Of a stretch of 35,380 nt of DNA, positions 4,927 through 28,960 are shown piece by piece (the first letter of the stretch is position 1; each line of letters opens with the position of its first letter). Source of the stretch: Octopus bimaculoides (Eukaryota); NCBI RefSeq assembly GCF_001194135.2, contig NC_068985.1:17944325-17979704 (forward strand), in the 5' to 3' direction. The notes under the pieces were generated by a model. The model was not told the origin of the DNA. It saw nothing but the letters and a program-made list of their open reading frames with translations, and searched no databases. The position numbers and the translations under genes are program-made.

Positions 4927-5297
4927 GAGATTTCTCATATGGGAAAAATAATTTTTGATTTAATATAGATAAGGTAGAAATATAAATGTATAAATGAACA
5001 TCTGGGGAAAGGGAATGTGATCGACCTATGAAATGGATCTAAACGGAGTCTGGAACTGTCACAGAATCGGTTTGTCAAAAGTTTATTTATACACCAGAAA
5101 GTGTATGCCACCAGAATTAAGTTTCAAATATGTAACGAATCGATAACAGCGTGAGTACAAATGTAAATCAATTAATAAATTTTCATCGTATTTTTAATTT
5201 CTGGACAGACAACTGTTTCAGGAGAATTTATCAAAATTACATTTTCGTTGATTTATTATTTTTTTTTTCATAAAGGACTATTGCTTTTTCATTGCAG

Positions 5298-5435
5298 AAT
5301 GGTTCTTTGTTTGTCGAGTTTTCGCCATGTTTGCGGCTGGACTTTGCCTTATAGCCACATTTCTTCAACTGATCTATTTCTGTTGTCCAAAGCAAATCAT
5401 CAGAGCTCAGTCGATGTATATGCTTGGCTCTTCAG
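5298..5435 (+). CDS. Internal (penultimate) exon of a PMP22/claudin/EMP-superfamily tetraspan membrane protein (TM2 to start of TM3)
   Basis: Acceptor ttttcattgcag|, donor tcag|gtaact, phase 1 to phase 1, 138 nt open: xWFFVCRVFAMFAAGLCLIATFLQLIYFCCPKQIIRAQSMYMLGSS. It splices in frame to 6592. Confidence 0.8.
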
Positions 5436-6230: not shown

Positions 6231-6591
6231 ACAATTCAATTACATTCAAGCCAGATCCTTGGCTCTGTCCCCGCGAACCGTTTTCCCTTCAAACATTGAC
6301 CTGTACATGTAAAGGTTGGACATCAACCTTTACATTAACTTCAACCTGCTAGGAGGTCTTGCAAATGTCATATGCACTCCCCTTCCTTGACTTGAAAATC
6401 CTATTGTGATTAAATTTGAGAAAAATCCTTATACTAAATTAAGCAATTTATTTCTATTTATTAATAATTGCTGTTTAATAAAAAGTGGTAACTTAAATGA
6501 CAATATATTCTTTTTTTTTAGTCATTATTGGTGAAAAAGAATAATTTCTTTTACATATTTTATCCAGTTCCATAATATTTTTATTTTTCAG

Positions 6592-6794
6592 GTTTGTTTA
6601 TTTTGATGTCTGTGTTCATCTTCATCGCTATGTACCAAGTAGCCCAACAGAAAAATAGTTACACTGATATTGAAATTCGACTTGGTTATCCTGTTGGGTT
6701 TTGCATAATTGCTGGAGTCTTAGCTATAGCAGCCGCCATTTTAACTGCTGTTTCGTCAATCGTAGCCGAAAGAGATAACGAAGACTTTTATTAA
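6592..6794 (+). CDS. Last coding exon of the PMP22/claudin-superfamily protein (TM3, ECL2, TM4, short tail)
   Basis: Acceptor tttttatttttcag|, phase 1: GLFILMSVFIFIAMYQVAQQKNSYTDIEIRLGYPVGFCIIAGVLAIAAAILTAVSSIVAERDNEDFY*. Two hydrophobic helices, with the 'lGy..g.ciiagvl' TM4 pattern typical of the family. Exons carrying TM1/ECL1 were not found in the window. Confidence 0.82.
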
Positions 6795-7985: not shown

Positions 7986-8606
7986 ACCACATAATAAGTA
8001 ATTAATTAAGTAGATGAATGAATATTAAACTGATTCTGTGTAATCTTTCCTTTTTAATGTTTATAATTGATATACACACCTTTTGCCTATTCTGGTTATG
8101 ATATCATTTTTGAAATTCTTAAATTTTATTTTCATACAACATTACAATATAGTTTATAAACAATCATCCATAGTGCCCCTAAATAAAATTTCTTCTGTAT
8201 TAACAGCTTAGATTTCTTAGCGTCTTGCCTCTTTAACTGGTAATTAACATCATGATTTAAAGTCTACGCTACTCTGCTTCTTTTTATAGAGAGTCACTTA
8301 TATCCAACTGACTACTCCTAATGTCTTATTTCCTCCCCGAGGAAAAGGGATACATATGATAATATTTATGACCACACCTAGCCATAAGCAGTCAAGTCAC
8401 TCATGTCCTTTATTCAAAATAAAAACAGTCTTCTAGTCTTAGATTTAGTAGTTGATAAAAAGATAAATGAATTANNNNNNNNNNNNNNNNNNNNNNNNNN
8501 NNNNNNNNNNNNNNNNNNNNNNNNNNNNNNNNNNNNNNNNNNNNNNNNNNNNNNNNNNNNNNNNNNNNNNNNNNATGTATGTATGTATGTATGTATGTAT
8601 GTATGT

Positions 8607-8820
8607 ATATAATTGTATGAAGGGAGCAAGGGCGAAAAAAACAACGTATCTCCAACATGCTTGAAAATGCCGAGGCATTCAGATACTACCGAAAATCTCC
8701 AAATATATATATATACACGGATTGTAGGCGAGCGAGTGAAAAAAACACACTAAAAATACTTCTCGTTAATTGTGGAGATAAGTCGTTTTTTTCGCCCTTG
8801 CTCCTTTAATATAATTATAT
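8607..8820. mobile_element. MITE with ~48-bp TIRs between (TATG)n and (TA)n-type repeats
   Basis: 8607-8654 atataattgtatgaagggagcaagggcgaaaaaaacaacgtatctcca versus reverse complement of 8773-8820 atataattatattaaaggagcaagggcgaaaaaaacgacttatctcca. Confidence 0.8.
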
Positions 8821-8904
8821 ACATACATATATATAAATATATATATATACATATACATATATATGTATATATATGTATATATATGTATATATATATATAC
8901 ATAT

Positions 8905-9025
8905 GTGTGTGTGTTTACGTCCCTGTAACTTAGCGGTTCGGCAAAACTTATCGATAGGATAAGTACAAGGCTTCACAAAGAATAAGTTCTGAAGTCAATT
9001 TTCTGGACTAGAGTTCTTCAAGGTG
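8905..9025 (+). mobile_element. CORE-type SINE 3' fragment
   Basis: gtgtttacgtccctgtaacttagcggttcggcaaaa...aggcttcacaaagaataag matches 23640-23720. Confidence 0.7.
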
Positions 9026-9565
9026 AGGAGTGGAATTGATAGTATAACGTTTATTCCGTGGGTGATAATTGTTTGAACAACTTGCAGGTGGCCAGTCTTA
9101 TACCATGTCTATACAATTGGATGATAACGACGATTTAGTCATTCATATTTTGTAAAATGTACGTAGTCCGCAACCTGAATTTCCAAAGGAGAAATTCTCC
9201 GGTATGTAACTTCAATCGTTGAGTGCTTCCTAAGGTAAACGCTCGGGTTATCCACTAACTTACTATACATACATACATACATACATACATACATACATAC
9301 ATACATACACACATACATACATAACGGTATGTGTGTATATANNNNNNNNNNNNNNNNNNNNNNNNNNNNNNNNNNNNNNNNNNNNNNNNNNNNNNNNNNN
9401 NNNNNNNNNNNNNNNNNNNNNNNNNNNNNNNNNNNNNNNNNNNNNNNNNNNNNNNNNNNNNNNNNNNNNNNNNNNNNNNNNNNNNNNNNNNNNNNNNNNN
9501 NNNNNNNNNNNNNNNNNNNNNNNNNNNNNNNNNNNNNNNNNNNNNNNNNNNNNNNNNNNNNNNNN

Positions 9566-11153: not shown

Positions 11154-11263
11154 ATAGCGCACCTGCCGCAAGGTCATCGGCAGCTGAATAGCGACTTTTG
11201 TAACCAAAATCAAACATTTTGTCTAAGGCGCTGGCATTTCTTGCACTTCTTAATTTACTGCGT
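11154..11263 (-). CDS. Candidate exon 3 of a secreted neuropeptide precursor, containing the DH31-like segment
   Basis: Single open frame (K)RSKLRSARNASALDKMFDFGYKSRYSAADDLAAGAL, ending at the donor at|gtgagt (11153). A cag sits at the gap edge (11266-11264), with an alternative at 11260-11258. Both are phase 2, matching exon 16156-16052. The true 5' boundary may lie in the gap. Confidence 0.55.
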
Positions 11264-12399
11264 CTGNNNNNNNNNNNNNNNNNNNNNNNNNNNNNNNNNN
11301 NNNNNNNNNNNNNNNNNNNNNNNNNNNNNNNNNNNNNNNNNNNNNNNNNNNNNNNNNNNNNNNNNNNNNNNNNNNNNNNNNNNNNNNNNNNNNNNNNNNN
11401 NNNNNNNNNNNNNNNNNNNNNNNNNNNNNNNNNNNNNNNNNNNNNNNNNNNNNNNNNNNNNNNNNNNNNNNNNNNNNNNNNNNNNNNNNNNNNNNNNNNN
11501 NNNNNNNNNNNNNNNNNNNNNNNNNNNNNNNNNNNNNNNNNNNNNNNNNNNNNNNNNNNNNNNNNNNNNNNNNNNNNNNNNNNNNNNNNNNNNNNNNNNN
11601 NNNNNNNNNNNNNNNNNNNNNNNNNNNNNNNNNNNNNNNNNNNNNNNNNNNNNNNNNNNNNNNNNNNNNNNNNNNNNNNNNNNNNNNNNNNNNNNNNNNN
11701 NNNNNNNNNNNNNNNNNNNNNNNNNNNNNNNNNNNNNNNNNNNNNNNNNNNNNNNNNNNNNNNNNNNNNNNNNNNNNNNNNNNNNNNNNNNNNNNNNNNN
11801 NNNNNNNNNNNNNNNNNNNNNNNNNNNNNNNNNNNNNNNNNNNNNNNNNNNNNNNNNNNNNNNNNNNNNNNNNNNNNNNNNNNNNNNNNNNNNNNNNNNN
11901 NNNNNNNNNNNNNNNNNNNNNNNNNNNNNNNNNNNNNNNNNNNNNNNNNNNNNNNNNNNNNNNNNNNNNNNNNNNNNNNNNNNNNNNNNNNNNNNNNNNN
12001 NNNNNNNNNNNNNNNNNNNNNNNNNNNNNNNNNNNNNNNNNNNNNNNNNNNNNNNNNNNNNNNNNNNNNNNNNNNNNNNNNNNNNNNNNNNNNNNNNNNN
12101 NNNNNNNNNNNNNNNNNNNNNNNNNNNNNNNNNNNNNNNNNNNNNNNNNNNNNNNNNNNNNNNNNNNNNNNNNNNNNNACGAAATCCATTGGGTTCAACA
12201 CTGGGGTCTAGCGAAACTAACAGGGCTGACAAGCCAACTGTGAGAAGGAATAAAACGCAAAAGATGTAATTTACATTACGATTTTCCTTAGACACCCGGC
12301 TGCTTTGGTGACTTCCAGAATTTCTATATGTTCCAATTCTTCTTTTTTTTTTTATCATCGTCATCATCATCTTTGTTCAACATTTAGTAGTTTCAGGCA

Positions 12400-12790
12400 A
12401 ATTTCTACTACATCGCCTGCTACACTTCCTTGTTGATGGGGTGTGTGCTGCATTTCCTCTATCGATCTGTTAAAATCTTTAGAGATAGCTCCTCATGTAC
12501 CTATATCTACTAGGATACATTTTACCTGCACTTTCCATAGTTTCTGTAATTCAATAGCTAGGTCCTATTACTTTGCTATTTTTTCTGTACCTCTCATAGT
12601 GACTTTTTTCATCATTTGGGACTGTAAAGTCAATTATCTGGCACTATCTGTTCTCTTTGTCTATCGCTACTATAAAAGACCTTCTAGCTTCTGTTACTCT
12701 ATCAGTCTGAACGTTAAAGTCCCACAACATCTTATATTTCCTAATTCCAAGTACTTTACTAGGTTCATGTCCATATCATTTATCAATACG
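12400..12790 (-). mobile_element. Decayed R4/Dong-clade RLE fragment (second subfamily)
   Basis: *YGHEPSKVLGIRKYKMLWDFNVQTDRVTEARRSFIVAIDKENR*CQIIDFTVPND..VTMRGTEKIAK**DLAIELQKLWKVQVKCILVDIGT*GAISKDF. (GAA)n lies upstream and (GAT)n downstream on the element strand. Confidence 0.8.
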
Positions 12791-12846
12791 TTAAAATCCT
12801 AGCTTTCTACATAACTCTCAGTGGGTTACTCTCCCTAGGTGTCATG

Positions 12847-12891
12847 TCTTTTCTTCTTCTTCTTCTTCTTCTTCTTCTTCTTCTTCTTCTT
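12847..12891. repeat. (TTC)n microsatellite at a gap edge
   Basis: Visible directly. Confidence 0.95.
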
Positions 12892-12904
12892 NNNNNNNNN
12901 NCCA

Positions 12905-13390
12905 TTTCTTTTAGGGAAACGTTAAAACTCTCTGCTTTATTTTTGCTGGGTATGTTGGAAAGTATCAGCTGCCCAGAGCCAGCATACTAAAGTGACACTT
13001 GTTTACTGGTCACGCTTCAAAAACCCTGTGGCGGACTCTTGCAGTTCCGTGTAATGATGGTTTTTGTAGGTGTTCTTTCTCAACATTCGTTCCAATCTGT
13101 TTGAATAGCGTTGGTAGTTGAAGGCTGATACTTCCAAGTGCACCAATCACTATTGGTATCACGTCCACTTTCTTCATTGCCCACCGCCTGCGTATTTCCC
13201 ACTTCAATTCATCATAGTTGTTCACTCTTTCTTCTTCCTTCTCTTCAATCCACTTGTCACCAGAACATGTTATGTCAATTATCAGCCATGTTGTTTTCTT
13301 GTCTGTTCACCACAACAATGTCAGGTTTCCGATGTTTAATCTGATGGTCGCACAAAATCATTGCATTCCACAGGATTTTGCAATCCTCAT
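12905..13390 (-). mobile_element. R4/Dong-clade RLE fragment (third subfamily) with 3' UTR
   Basis: EDCKILW..CDHQIKHRKPDIVVV...IIDITCSGDKWIEEKEEEK (frameshifts) continuing into ORF 13010..13225 NNYDELKWEIRRRWAMKKVDVIPIVIGALGSISLQL...LQKPSLHGTARV. The 5' end abuts (AAT)n/(GAT)n. Confidence 0.85.
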
Positions 13391-13411
13391 TTATTATTAT
13401 TGTCATCATCA

Positions 13412-13494
<83 letters not shown>
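13391..13494. repeat. (ATT)n(AAT)n head-to-head microsatellite (palindromic)
   Basis: The switch point attaat is at 13441-13446. Confidence 0.9.
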
Positions 13495-13496
<2 letters not shown>

Positions 13497-13611
13497 AGGA
13501 GCTTCCTAAAATACAGAGTCACAATAGATATTAGACCTTATAATCTTGACTGATCTTTTGTAACCCATCCGCATATTATTTTGTCGAAGTTGCATCTATA
13601 GAATAAGTTTC

Positions 13612-14443
13612 TTATTTCTTTATTGCCCACAAGGGGATAAACATAGAGGGGACAAACAAGGACAGACAAAGAGATTAAGTCGATTACATCGACGCCAGTG
13701 CGTAACTGATACTTAATTTATCGACCCCGAAAGGATGAAAGGCAAAGTCGACCTCGGCGGAATTTGAACTCAGGACGTAACAGCAGACGAAATACCGCTA
13801 AGCATTTCGCCCGGTGCGCTAACGTTTCTGCCAGCTCACCGCTTTTCATAGAATAAGTTTCTGCTTCAGGACGTCGAATAGGCAGAGTCGTTAAGAAATT
13901 CAACTAGAATGGCGGGCGCCCTTTTTCCAATTAAATAAATAAACTTAGAAATTTAAAGACAATACTACTACAGAAGTAAAAAAAAAAAAAAAAACTTACT
14001 TGTTTCTTATAATTCTCTCTCTNNNNNNNNNNTTATTTCTTTATTGCCCACAAGGGGATAAACATAGAGGGGACAAACAAGGACAGACAAAGAGATTAAG
14101 TCGATTACATCGACGCCAGTGCGTAACTGATACTTAATTTATCGACCCCGAAAGGATGAAAGGCAAAGTCGACCTCGGCGGAATTTGAACTCAGGACGTA
14201 ACAGCAGACGAAATACCGCTAAGCATTTCGCCCGGTGCGCTAACGTTTCTGCCAGCTCACCGCTTTTCATAGAATAAGTTTCTGCTTCAGGACGTCGAAT
14301 AGGCAGAGTCGTTAAGAAATTCAACTAGAATGGCGGGCGCCCTTTTTCCAATTAAATAAATAAACTTAGAAATTTAAAGACAATACTACTACAGAAGTAA
14401 AAAAAAAAAAAAAAACTTACTTGTTTCTTATAATTCTCTCTCT
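13612..14443. repeat. Direct duplication of 411 bp across a 10-N gap (13612-14022 = 14033-14443), probably an assembly overlap artefact
   Basis: Offset 421. The ORFs at 13718..13903 and 14139..14324 are identical. Copy 1 ends and copy 2 begins exactly at the gap edges. Confidence 0.8.
13613..13847 (-). mobile_element. Young full-length Meta-type tRNA-derived SINE with 15-bp TSD
   Basis: TSD atagaataagtttct at 13598-13612 and 13848-13862. The core ttgcctttcatcctttcggggtcgataaattaagta resembles the MetaSINE domain (label from memory). Close match to 27929-28150. Confidence 0.85.
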
Positions 14444-14771
14444 TTTTCCTCCTCTTCTTCCCTCTGTTTCCTTACTATTTCGATCTTTCATCATGCCGTG
14501 ACGGCGTTTCTATTTCTCCAAATTTCTTTCTTCGTTCTTATATCTCCATCTCTATCCTATCTCTTAGAAAAACAGTATATACCCGAAACCTATCGCCCCA
14601 CCCAACTATTTCTGAGCATCAAACAAATACCAATTATGTTTATTTCTATTACCTCATTTTTGCGTTATATTTTTCGCCATCTTTGCCCACACCATCACCA
14701 CCACACACACATACAAACAAACACGTACATATGTATATGTATATATATGTGTGTGGGTGCGTGTGTATATA

Positions 14772-15075
14772 TGTTGTTGTTGTTGGCACTCCGTCGCTTA
14801 CGACGTCGAGGGTTCCAGTTGATCCGATCAACGGAACAGCCTGCTCATAAAATTAACGTGCAAGTGGCTGAGCACTCCACAGACACGTGTACCCTTAAGG
14901 TAGTTCTCGGAGATATTCAGCGTGACACAATGTGACAAGGCTGACCCTTTGAATTACAGACACAACAGAAACAGGAAGTAAGAGTGAGAGAAAGTTGTGG
15001 TGAAAGAGTACAGCAGGGTTCGCCACCATCTTCTGCCGGAGCCTCGTGGAGATTTAGGTGTTTTCGCTCAATAAA
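14772..15075 (-). mobile_element. tRNA-derived SINE (same family as 29677-30062), head lost in the gap, (AAC)n tail
   Basis: High reverse-complement identity to 29760-30060. Confidence 0.85.
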
Positions 15076-15697
15076 NNNNNNNNNNNNNNNNNNNNNNNNN
15101 NNNNNNNNNNNNNNNNNNNNNNNNNNNNNNNNNNNNNNNNNNNNNNNNNNNNNNNNNNNNNNNNNNNNNNNNNNNNNNNNNNNNNNNNNNNNNNNNNNNN
15201 NNNNNNNNNNNNNNNNNNNNNNNNNNNNNNNNNNNNNNNNNNNNNNNNNNNNNNNNNNNNNNNNNNNNNNNNNNNNNNNNNNNNNNNNNNNNNNNNNNNN
15301 NNNNNNNNNNNNNNNNNNNNNNNNNNNNNNNNNNNNNNNNNNNNNNNNNNNNNNNNNNNNNNNNNNNNNNNNNNNNNNNNNNNNNNNNNNNNNNNNNNNN
15401 NNNNNNNNNNNNNNNNNNNNNNNNNNNNNNNNNNNNNNNNNNNNNNNNNNNNNNNNNNNNNNNNNNNNNNNNNNNNNNNNNNNNNNNNNNNNNNNNNNNN
15501 NNNNNNNNNNNNNNNNNNNNNNNNNNNNNNNNNNNNNNNNNNNNNNNNNNNNNNNNNNNNNNNNNNNNNNNNNNCATACGCACTTACACGCGCGTCTTAC
15601 TATTTTATCGAAAAAACAAAAAGAAATTAAAGACAAAATTATTCTGAGGGTCCTTTCGGGAAATTACTCAAGAAGGGAAAAATATTTTCAATTAAAT

Positions 15698-15993
15698 CAG
15701 TGGCTTTCGACCATTTGTTGTCCATGGACCCCTTTGATTCCCATTTTACTTGGGTGGATCCTCATACCCATTTGATATTTTAAAATGTCCCATTATATTT
15801 TTAGTATTAAATATTATTAGGAACTGCATAAAAAATTAAGATATTTGGTGTATTGAAGAAGCATAAGCAATTTATTTATTGCACATAAATTTTAACAAAG
15901 CAAGAACAATCTTATATGGAGCCCCAAAGGTCATATAGACCTTCAGGGTTATATGGAACCCTAAGGATCATGGACCCTAGTTGAGAACCGCTG
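15698..15993. mobile_element. hAT (Charlie-like) MITE with 8-bp TSD
   Basis: TIRs cagtggctttcgacc / gttgagaaccgctg. TSD aattaaat / agttaaat (7/8). Confidence 0.7.
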
Positions 15994-16051
15994 AGTTAAA
16001 TAATAACATGAAACCAGTCAGAAAAAATTTCGCTGCAATCAATATACTCAC

Positions 16052-16156
16052 TTCATTAGAACCCGGATAATATTGGGAAGATAATAAGGTGGAATGTAAC
16101 TATTCTCTTCTAATGGCACCAGGTTTCCCGCTTCAGAGTTTTGATTGTAAGCAAAC
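16052..16156 (-). CDS. Candidate exon 2 of the secreted precursor
   Basis: Acceptor gttatatttcag|, donor aa|gtgagt, 105 nt, phase 2 to phase 2. Only one frame is open: (R)FAYNQNSEAGNLVPLEENSYIPPYYLPNIIRVLM. Confidence 0.65.
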
Positions 16157-16974
16157 CTGAAATATAACAAACATAACTGTAAAACAGTAGACTTTGAGGA
16201 ATGTAGCAATGATTTGTGTCGGCAAATAGTAATGCAAAATAGTTCAAATAGTGGGATAAATTTTGTGTCTTAAGGATGAAGAGAAGTTTAACGTTTAGGA
16301 TACAATCCGTCGTCATCGGAGAGAAACGAGTGTTTACTAATGTTACTGTTTGTTTTAGTGAAATAGGAAACATATCCCAGGACACCGACGAACGTTCGTG
16401 ATCTCCACTGACATAGGCATCCTGGAAGTCGTTGCAATGTCACAATTAACCCAGAAGATAAGGATGATACTGTTTCTGTTTGGCGTATTGTCTTCTGTCA
16501 ATAGAAAATCATCCAATAGCGTAGAAATATAGATTTCCATCGGAAGCTACCCATAGATCATGTACTTCAGATAAAAAAGAAATGCTATCATGACACAAAC
16601 GTTGTGAATGAAATGGGAACAGGCTAAGGCTGTGCGGAAGCTCCACTGAACTCCTCTCCAGTTACACAGTTAATTATTAAATAGTGAAAGATTGTGCTAA
16701 TAGAAAAGATTCTATAGCAACGAGAAATTCTTCAAAGCATTTGAATCTTCCATTTTTGTGCAAGCCCAGGGTCATCAGAGAATGAAATTAACAAGGGTGA
16801 AAAACGTTGAGATTGTAAGATATTGGATGTACTGTAATATGCCATTGTTCCGAGCCCAAAGTATGCCGAAAATGCTTTTTCTTCCATTTTTGATGTAAGA
16901 TCCAGTAAAATATTGACATTCCTTTCTGTAAAAATGTAAGAAGTAATACTATAACTAAATTCTCTAATACTTAC

Positions 16975-17066
16975 CGCTCTTTTGCCGATGATTTTCTTAT
17001 AAAGCCACCTAACCCAGAAGGAACAGCTATCAGTAGAATATTCAAGATTAGGATAAGCGAAGACAT
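16975..17066 (-). CDS. Candidate first coding exon (signal peptide) of the secreted precursor; the exon starts at 17075
   Basis: Acceptor aaactattttacag|, then aaaATG at 17066-17064, MSSLILILNILLIAVPSGLG-GFIRKSSAKE(R), donor cg|gtaagt. It ends in phase 2, matching exon 16156-16052. A second frame (FENVFAYPNLEY...) is also open, so the frame rests on phase compatibility and signal-peptide character. Confidence 0.6.
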
Positions 17067-17663
17067 TTTCAAACGCTGTAAAATAGTTTAAAAGAAAGAC
17101 AAATTACAAGACAACATTAAACGAATGAAAATATAGATGTTTATTAATACTATATTTTTTGTCATACATTTCGAAGTTTTCAGACCAAAATTTACAGCCC
17201 CAAAATTGTATCTTGAATTATACACCAAGACGACTTTAGAAGACCAAAAATTCCACGTGAAACGTAGCAGGATTTGGTAAGATAGTGACGATGTTCGAAT
17301 ATTTACATTACTTGTTTATACAGTTCGAATGTTTATACCTCATTTTTACACTCTAGACTATGTCGACTTGGATGCCGGAAAATACGGTGACATGTTTATA
17401 TTGTTTATCAATGGTATAGATCATCTTTTGACTAAGCATAAGGCGTATTTTTATAAGGGAGTAAAGAGTCGATTATTCCATGAGAACTAAATTATTTAGC
17501 TTTTAATATATAAATAAATGTGGTCAGGATGATAACAGCAAGAAATGAATGGAAAGTTGGATGAGAAAGAACTCAATTGTATTGGATATGACTGTCCATT
17601 AGGGAACTATGGAAAAGCTCAAGTTCTTTTCATACAGTGGTATGCTAGCGGACTGGTTATCAA

Positions 17664-26364: not shown

Positions 26365-26542
26365 CTTCACTTGTTTCAGTCATTAGAATGCGGCCATACT
26401 ACAGCATCGCCTTAAAGGATTTTAATCGAACGAATCAACTCTAGTACTTATTTTTTTAAAGCCTGGTACTCATTCTATCGGTTTATTTTGCTGAATCGCT
26501 AAGTTACTACAACGTAAACTCCTAGTACCGGTTGTCAAGCGC
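26365..26542 (-). mobile_element. CORE-type SINE 3' half
   Basis: ttgtttcagtcattagaatgcggccatact...ctagtaccggttgtcaagcg. Confidence 0.8.
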
Positions 26543-26597
26543 GCGCGAACCTACACGCACATGCATTTTTAAAATTTTCTGAAAAATCAGAAAAGTG

Positions 26598-28730: not shown

Positions 28731-28960
28731 TGCATAATAGCAACGATTTGTATATCTTAACTTTACATAATTTATTCCATACTTAAATAACAATGTCATC
28801 TTGATGACTACACTAATTAAAAACATTGCTTAACTGTTTGATTTACCGCTAGTGAAATATATCAAATATATCTGCGTCGAAATAATCTTAACAAAAATCT
28901 CGACACTGTCCGCGATGTGATTATGCTGTTGTTATACAAATATAAAGTTTCTTAACGTAT

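Follow-up and report, generated by a model that had tools for sequence, protein, structure and literature searches.

The 35,380-nucleotide stretch of the Octopus bimaculoides genome analysed here (NC_068985.1, 17,944,325–17,979,704; hereafter the window) carries on its minus strand the gene LOC106871750, which encodes a small secreted prepropeptide shared by octopods. We propose that this octopod gene is probably a DH31-type precursor, belonging to the cysteine-free members of the calcitonin family and descended from the lophotrochozoan DH31 gene. We describe it as a divergent variant and not a canonical DH31 because it combines an N-terminal extension, a shorter C terminus and an Ala-amide end. 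The strongest evidence for the assignment is gene structure, namely the match of two introns in position and phase with DH31 genes, and profile comparisons point in the same direction.

A conserved octopod prepropeptide gene

A sequence-only reading of the window had suggested three minus-strand exons with GT–AG splice sites that join into one open frame, and had guessed at a cephalopod source. Our analysis recovered the exons at the same coordinates (Table 1); together they make 307 nt, with the same 102-residue frame and a single leftover base that belongs to a split codon. Along its whole length the spliced product matches XP_014773865.1, the O. bimaculoides protein of LOC106871750, with 100% identity, which settles the source of the DNA. 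The gene had also been described as hidden, which it is not, as NCBI annotates its product as an uncharacterized protein. The product is 98% identical to that of Octopus sinensis LOC115212303, and when 1.84 billion representative proteins were scanned with HMMER, only one further relative emerged, an orthologue in the octopod Argonauta hians (42% identity, E = 7.5e-10).

The frame formed by exons 1–3 is under purifying selection. Between O. bimaculoides and O. sinensis it has accumulated 7 synonymous changes, 1 non-synonymous change and 1 in-frame codon indel over 71.7 synonymous and 234.3 non-synonymous sites, which corresponds to a ratio of non-synonymous to synonymous substitution rates (dN/dS) of about 0.04, and the alignable intron sequence of the two species is ~7–8% diverged, near the synonymous rate. 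Because the product is identical at full length to an annotated O. bimaculoides protein and nearly so to that of O. sinensis, and so few of the changes are non-synonymous, the three-exon frame is beyond chance. The gene is confirmed as O. bimaculoides LOC106871750, an orthologue in a four-exon family of small secreted octopod prepropeptides. In O. sinensis exon 2 is 108 nt long and in Argonauta 105 nt, its phases being those seen in the window.

The O. sinensis and Argonauta models begin at the Met equivalent to window position 17066. XP_014773865.1 is modelled with an upstream exon (MMDQLRLK...), which an AG acceptor at 17077–17076 permits. This exon (ATGATGGAYCAR) was found neither in the readable window nor in the 10 kb upstream of the gene in O. 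sinensis; it may lie in a gap, lie outside the window or be an artefact of the model.

Table 1 Features of the gene in the window (minus strand) and exon structures of the genes compared with it
Feature	Position	Strand	Length, phase and splice sites	Content or remark
Coding exon 1	17066–16975	minus	92 nt; donor GTAAGT; ends in phase 2	ATG at 17066–17064; start codon, putative signal peptide MSSLILILNILLIAVPSGLG (17066–17007) and first propeptide residues
Coding exon 2	16156–16052	minus	105 nt; start phase 2; acceptor ...TTTCAG, donor GTGAGT	Propeptide spacer RFAYNQNSEAGNLVPLEENSYIPPYYLPNIIRVLM and two of the three bases that code for Lys in the KR cleavage site
Intron 2	16051–11264	minus	Phase 2	Contains four assembly gaps (positions in the text)
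KR site	16053–16052 and 11263–11260	minus		Spans the exon 2/exon 3 junction
Coding exon 3	11263–11154	minus	110 nt; start phase 2; acceptor CAG, donor GTGAGT; ends 1 base into the split codon	(K)R and, after it, SKLRSARNASALDKMFDFGYKSRYSAADDLAAGAL, which makes up the first 35 residues of the predicted peptide
RSAR furin-like site	11250–11239	minus		Within exon 3
DFGYKSRY motif	11211–11188	minus		Within exon 3
Intron 3 GT donor	11153–11152	minus	Phase 1; reads GTGAGT	In the 20th codon from the conserved Asp
Expected location of exon 4	8475–8574	minus		100-N gap; placed by synteny with O. sinensis
O. sinensis gene			92/108/110/101 nt; start phases 0/2/2/1	Coding exons
Argonauta gene			80/105/95/80 nt; start phases 0/2/2/1	Coding exons
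Ridgeia gene			92/93/74/80 nt; start phases 0/2/2/1	Coding exons; DH31
Owenia gene			86/99/74/50 nt; start phases 0/2/2/1	Coding exons; DH31
Capitella gene			48/104/87/74/68 nt; start phases 0/0/2/2/1	Coding exons, one extra 5′ exon; DH31
Mercenaria LOC123537401	CM038775.1 (L005) 26445–26545, 28867–28950, 40452–40537, 43837–43955		101/84/86/119 nt; start phases 0/2/2/1	Coding exons

Completed from its orthologues, the precursor comprises a signal peptide, a spacer of ~45 residues, a KR site, one copy of the peptide, a Gly followed by RRRR or KRRR, and a short tail. The signal peptide was judged by eye from the hydrophobic N terminus and the small residues at −3/−1 (G-L-G); the hydrophobic core and these small residues are conserved in Argonauta, in which the overall plan matches (KR-SNTENKWNNVPDFGYNSRYRLADKLALQTLLKKLLEGA-G-KRRR-DV...). 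Conservation between Octopus and Argonauta is concentrated in the signal peptide, the KRS junction, the stretch DFGYxSRYxxADxLA and the A-G-basic-DV end. By established prohormone biochemistry the signal peptide would be removed, prohormone convertases would cut after KR67 and at RRRR, and carboxypeptidase trimming and PAM would turn the Gly into a C-terminal Ala-amide. The predicted product is SKLRSARNASALDKMFDFGYKSRYSAADDLAAGALLNYQLKKA-NH2, with 43 residues, or a 36-residue form, NASALDK...KKA-NH2, if the RSAR site is also cut; the predicted Argonauta peptide has 38 residues, and there is no Cys in the peptide of either genus. No basic site stands directly before DFGY in Octopus or Argonauta, which bears out a caveat raised earlier about the absence of a dibasic site before MFDFG, and cleavage after KR probably sets the start of the mature peptide, which would retain an N-terminal extension. 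As a presumed family member, it would signal through a family-B1 G-protein-coupled receptor of the calcitonin/DH31 type. The hydrophobic moment of the octopod peptides, as a sign of an amphipathic helix, is not above that of shuffles, and neither is that of genuine Platynereis DH31.

Gene structure and sequence comparison with DH31

We derived exon structures by exact spliced mapping in six genes, namely those of O. sinensis, Argonauta, the annelids Capitella, Ridgeia and Owenia, and the bivalve Mercenaria mercenaria (LOC123537401). In these genes intron 2 is in phase 2 and lies in or adjoins the basic site ahead of the peptide. Intron 3 is in phase 1 and falls, ungapped, exactly in the 20th codon from the conserved Asp (6/6 genes). 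The boundaries of exon 3 relative to the motif are identical to those in the window in every gene mapped, and the Capitella gene has its last two introns in common with the other five. The chance of such a two-intron match is small and the match is independent of the sequence score; gene structure is the strongest line of evidence for DH31. Further genomic open reading frames (P0024, P0026, P0027, P0030, P0025 and P0029) stop at ...GSKLM or ...GSQLM before unrelated sequence, or start at ALKQAADWNGPGRKRR; both patterns read as the trace that this phase-1 intron leaves in additional species.

For the sequence comparison, annelid DH31s were gathered with the DH31 precursor that Conzelmann et al. 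2013 give for Platynereis (KR-RIDAGYGSRYAAGASVGSKLRALKQAADWNGP-G-RKRR); the annelid motif cited in the first reading proved nearly exact against it. The motif D-x-G-Y-x-S-R-Y is common to the octopod and annelid DH31-type sequences compared and is not in Platynereis calcitonin. Aligned with hhalign, the octopod and annelid DH31 alignments match with P = 1.7e-5 and a probability of 78.6%, DFGYKSRY being paired with DAGYGSRY and AG-RRRR with PG-RKRR across a single three-residue gap, whereas the octopod alignment matches Platynereis calcitonin with P = 0.056 and aligns only at the amidation/cleavage site. A hidden Markov model (HMM) of DH31 was trained on a set of 16 precursors of this type, without octopods; those that carry a species name are from annelids, and several carry none. 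It scores Argonauta at 21.4 bits, O. sinensis at 19.7 bits and the window's exons 1–3 alone at 15.5 bits, against 9.8 bits for the best of 20,000 composition-matched shuffles. The profile match, the excess over shuffles and the intron positions and phases together support the divergent cephalopod DH31 that the sequence-only reading had suggested, and, with a downstream amidation signal in the orthologues and a DH31 profile match, the outcomes that it had named as refuting did not occur.

The profile search also retrieves a Urechis protein labelled DH31, proteins with the Pfam domain PF27927 'DH2-like' and a clam DH31-type precursor with a GP-amide. A Pfam scan gave no match for the octopod proteins, nor for genuine Platynereis DH31, with a set of models to which PF27927 'DH2-like' does not belong. 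Four proteins from transcriptome-type contigs (P0020, P0022, P0023 and P0021) are DH31-like precursors with altered N-terminal motifs, including NENTEYARYGRHGVGSKLLALKQAADWNGP-G-RKKR and VDAGYGSRNSAASQVGSKLVALYKAKNIYGP-G-RRKR. To judge from these four sequences, both ends of the peptide appear to vary across lophotrochozoans.

Several observations weigh against a DH31 origin. The predicted peptide has 38–43 residues, compared with about 31 in DH31. A C-terminal Pro-amide is absent, the orthologues ending in Ala-amide (KKA, EGA). The amidation signal itself lies outside the readable window and is placed there from the orthologues and synteny. No squid or cuttlefish (decapodiform) orthologue was found in the protein database and profile searches. 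Platynereis calcitonin reaches 17.3 bits on the DH31 HMM, and because of this score sequence scores alone separate DH31-type from calcitonin-type precursors weakly. The shared pattern of introns 2 and 3 comes from a comparison of the octopod genes with DH31-type genes. The canonical GP-amide end foreseen by the earlier reading is contradicted by the orthologues, which read ...KKA-G-RRRR in O. sinensis, and an alternative exon encoding GPG[KR][KR], and hence such an end, was not found in L001 (the O. sinensis locus), in L004 or in the window.

An alternative, which we consider unlikely, is that the gene encodes an octopod-specific orphan secreted peptide whose likeness to DH31 is coincidental. 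Its appeal is that very large databases yield only three octopod sequences, that their overall identity to annelid DH31 is 15–19%, that their termini are non-canonical and that Pfam offers no match, although the models used miss genuine Platynereis DH31 as well. A coincidence would, however, have to account for the hhalign P value of 1.7e-5 and for a DH31 HMM score ~10 bits over the best of 20,000 shuffles. It would also have to extend to two intron positions and phases conserved over three phyla-level lineages, including the ungapped 19-residue spacing from motif to intron 3, and to a precursor layout and placement of cleavage sites that match DH31.

Less plausible again is a descent from the calcitonin side, in which a calcitonin-type paralogue, and not a gene of the DH31 branch, lost both Cys residues. 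The hhalign P value is over three orders of magnitude lower for DH31 than for calcitonin, the mature region is free of Cys, and the D-x-G-Y-x-S-R-Y motif that it carries is not in Platynereis calcitonin; the clam DH31-type gene, with the same structure, further argues that the DH31 branch survived in conchiferan molluscs. What speaks for a calcitonin origin, besides the 17.3-bit score and the restriction of the intron comparison to DH31-type genes, is that molluscs keep calcitonin-type genes (PMC6425005, PMC7200681) and that LLNYQL-KKAGRRRRD aligns weakly with calcitonin YLNSPL-SPGRKRRD (P = 0.056). A divergent DH31-type precursor is the reading we carry forward.

The last exon and the assembly gaps

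The first reading had expected a final exon with an amidation signal. Such an exon is present in O. sinensis and Argonauta, with the signals A-G-RRRR and A-G-KRRR, respectively, but not in the readable window, where its expected site is a gap. In the gap-free O. sinensis locus, exon 4 (L001 17935–18035) reads (L)NYQLKKAGRRRRDVKPIRLYFRKYMPLPQQLF*, with an AATAAA ~90 nt further on. The junction with exon 3 reads ...GAL|LNYQLKKA-G-RRRR-DV..., an amidation and cleavage signal to which exon 4 contributes ...LNYQLKKAGRRRRDV.... Exon 4 of O. bimaculoides is expected to open as (L)NYQLKKAGRRRRDV... and would encode (L)NYQLKKA-G-RRRR-DVKPIRLYFRKYMPLPQQLF, followed by a stop codon and an AATAAA signal.

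Synteny brackets the exon. L001 17623–17709 corresponds to window 9341–9251 and L001 18475–18971 to window 8474–7979; the 765 bp between them in O. sinensis (L001 17710–18474), which contain exon 4, have no counterpart within the readable window. Searches with tblastn and blastn did not find exon 4 in the readable window. Their only match, VNYQLKR at 8248–8230, was rejected as a chance hit, the syntenic O. sinensis site reading VNCQLKR and lying outside the gene. As judged by synteny, exon 4 is most likely unsequenced in the assembly gap, and not absent.

Beside this gap, window 8575–9250 is a 676-bp piece that is missing from the corresponding site in O. sinensis. Runs of (TATG)n and (CATA)n delimit the piece, and at about 8809–9013 it includes an interspersed repeat with at least five copies in L001. 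Sitting where exon 4 should be, it is an insertion or else a small contig that was wrongly placed.

The end of exon 3 also bears on splicing, if in a small way. Its split codon begins with T here and with C in O. sinensis; completed by the TA of O. sinensis exon 4, the codon encodes Leu in both species, whereas read-through gives Cys here versus Arg there. Because the T/C difference is synonymous only when the transcript is spliced, it supports splicing at the exon 3 donor. The NCBI model XP_014773865.1 runs through this donor and ends ...GALCEYL*; with exon 4 in the assembly gap, the model would therefore be truncated at CEYL*. That the O. bimaculoides gene is itself truncated or decaying, with exon 4 lost and the CEYL* product real, is highly improbable: the ending of the NCBI model and the absence of exon 4 sequence anywhere in the readable window would fit such a loss, but exons 1–3 are under strong purifying selection, the GTGAGT donor is intact, the split-codon difference is silent only under splicing, and the expected site of exon 4 is a gap that adjoins microsatellites and the repeat-bearing piece without an O. 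sinensis counterpart.

Four further gaps lie in intron 2 (11267–12178, 12892–12901, 14023–14032 and 15076–15574), and none of the three exons contains an N. The readable blocks of this intron are collinear with L001 11777–16464 and match it in orientation, and its length is 4,788 bp here, with gap lengths estimated, compared with 4,688 bp in O. sinensis. The exon 3 acceptor lies 3 nt from a gap edge, a proximity that had been flagged as a caveat; O. sinensis and Argonauta use the equivalent acceptor in the same phase. Directly upstream of that acceptor O. sinensis has a T17 tract, the corresponding stretch being unread here, and this tract may explain the break in the sequence. The 10-N gap at 14023–14032 is flanked by an exact 411-bp duplicate (window 13612–14022 and 14033–14443) that is single-copy in O. 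sinensis and looks like an assembly artefact of unmerged overlapping contig ends.

A convergent neighbouring gene lies on the plus strand at about 373–405, 5273–5428 and 6579–6794. Its exons were located by tblastn, and the reconstruction of their structure is ambiguous. The O. sinensis model has 126 residues (L001 20996–26060, minus strand) and describes a small multi-pass membrane protein with a Pfam Claudin_3 match of 24.2 bits, below the cutoff of 28.7.

Molluscan DH31 and comparison with known systems

DH31 has been stated to be lost in molluscs (Conzelmann 2013, PMC3890597; Cai 2018, PMC6002491) or restricted among them to a chiton (De Oliveira 2019, PMC6425005; Thiel 2021, PMC8557429), and molluscs retain calcitonin-type genes (PMC6425005, PMC7200681). 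Bivalves, on these accounts, have no DH31. The scallop "calcitonin/DH31" peptides all contain Cys. A Pro-amide C terminus is conserved in all calcitonin-family peptides but CGRP (Cai et al. 2018, PMC6002491). Molluscs also have DH31R-like family-B1 receptors (L-DCc1), which mussel calcitonins activate at micromolar concentrations only, a result deemed puzzling (PMC8557429; PMC7200681). A literature search on the peptide string and the LOC and XP identifiers returned no paper, within a coverage that excludes Cardoso et al. 2024 (Mol Cell Endocrinol 586:112192), possibly on mollusc DH31-like ligands.

Octopod and clam DH31-type genes would revise the scenario of DH31 loss in molluscs, and their peptides are concrete candidates for the DH31R-like receptors. 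Evenly balanced, in our judgement, is the broader proposal that conchiferans kept DH31 signalling, fast-evolving in octopods and near-canonical in Mercenaria, and that these peptides are the missing ligands of the L-DCc1 receptors. The two ends of a family-B ligand, the Pro-amide among them, may change without a change in gene structure, and intron phase would therefore be a useful marker for fast-evolving neuropeptide genes. For annotation, our analysis offers a function class for LOC106871750, LOC115212303 and the Argonauta gene, and flags the O. bimaculoides model as gap-truncated.

Among known systems, arthropod DH31, or calcitonin-like diuretic hormone, is a Cys-free calcitonin-family peptide, as in octopods, but has exactly 31 residues and a GGP-amide end, unlike the octopod peptide. 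Drosophila DH31 (TVDFGLARGYSG...) has an N-terminal D-[FL]-G motif and is amidated. The sources for arthropod DH31 are Furuya et al. 2000 and Coast et al. 2001, as cited in PMC6002491. The diuretic, gut-motility and circadian roles of DH31 are established in insects, and by analogy alone they would not be transferable to octopus as such.

The lophotrochozoan calcitonins (Cragi-CT1/2, mussel CALCI/II, scallop CT and Platynereis calcitonin) belong to the same superfamily and resemble the octopod precursors in having an amidation signal and then a basic cleavage site. They differ in the two N-terminal Cys residues that form a ring and in their Pro-amide end, and the octopod profile, set against Platynereis calcitonin, aligns at the cleavage site only.

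Annelid DH31 (Platynereis, Capitella CAPTEDRAFT_215078, Ridgeia, Owenia and Urechis) is, like the octopod gene product, a single-copy peptide precursor of ~105–135 residues. It has the octopod-like order of signal peptide, spacer, basic site, peptide, Gly with four basic residues and short tail, and it has no Cys pair. The annelid peptide has ~31 residues, with Asp at position 2–3, and ends ...LKQAADWNGP-amide. In octopods, by contrast, 11–16 residues separate the KR site from the conserved Asp, and 8 residues follow intron 3 (...KKA-amide or ...EGA-amide) compared with 11 in annelid DH31; conservation between the two groups is poor in the mid-region of the peptide.

Mercenaria LOC123537401 is annotated as "uncharacterized". 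Its precursor, ...RERR-GHLSDAGYGSRVSAGSNIASAVMARQGLFGITGP-G-RRKRR, would yield the peptide SDAGYGSRVSAGSNIASAVMARQGLFGITGP, which is Cys-free and carries DAGYGSR. In exon phases and in the site of intron 3 the gene agrees with the octopods; isoform X1 has a first exon that is unlike a signal peptide. The mid-region SRVSAGSNIAS is nearer to octopus SRYSAADDLAA than annelid sequences are (P = 0.0022). Unlike the octopods, the clam keeps the full length and a GP-amide end (...GLFGITGP-G-RRKRR), and in it five residues, GHLSD, separate the RR site from the motif. From its sequence and exon structure, LOC123537401 reads as a near-canonical DH31-type precursor, through which the DH31 branch would have survived in conchiferan molluscs.

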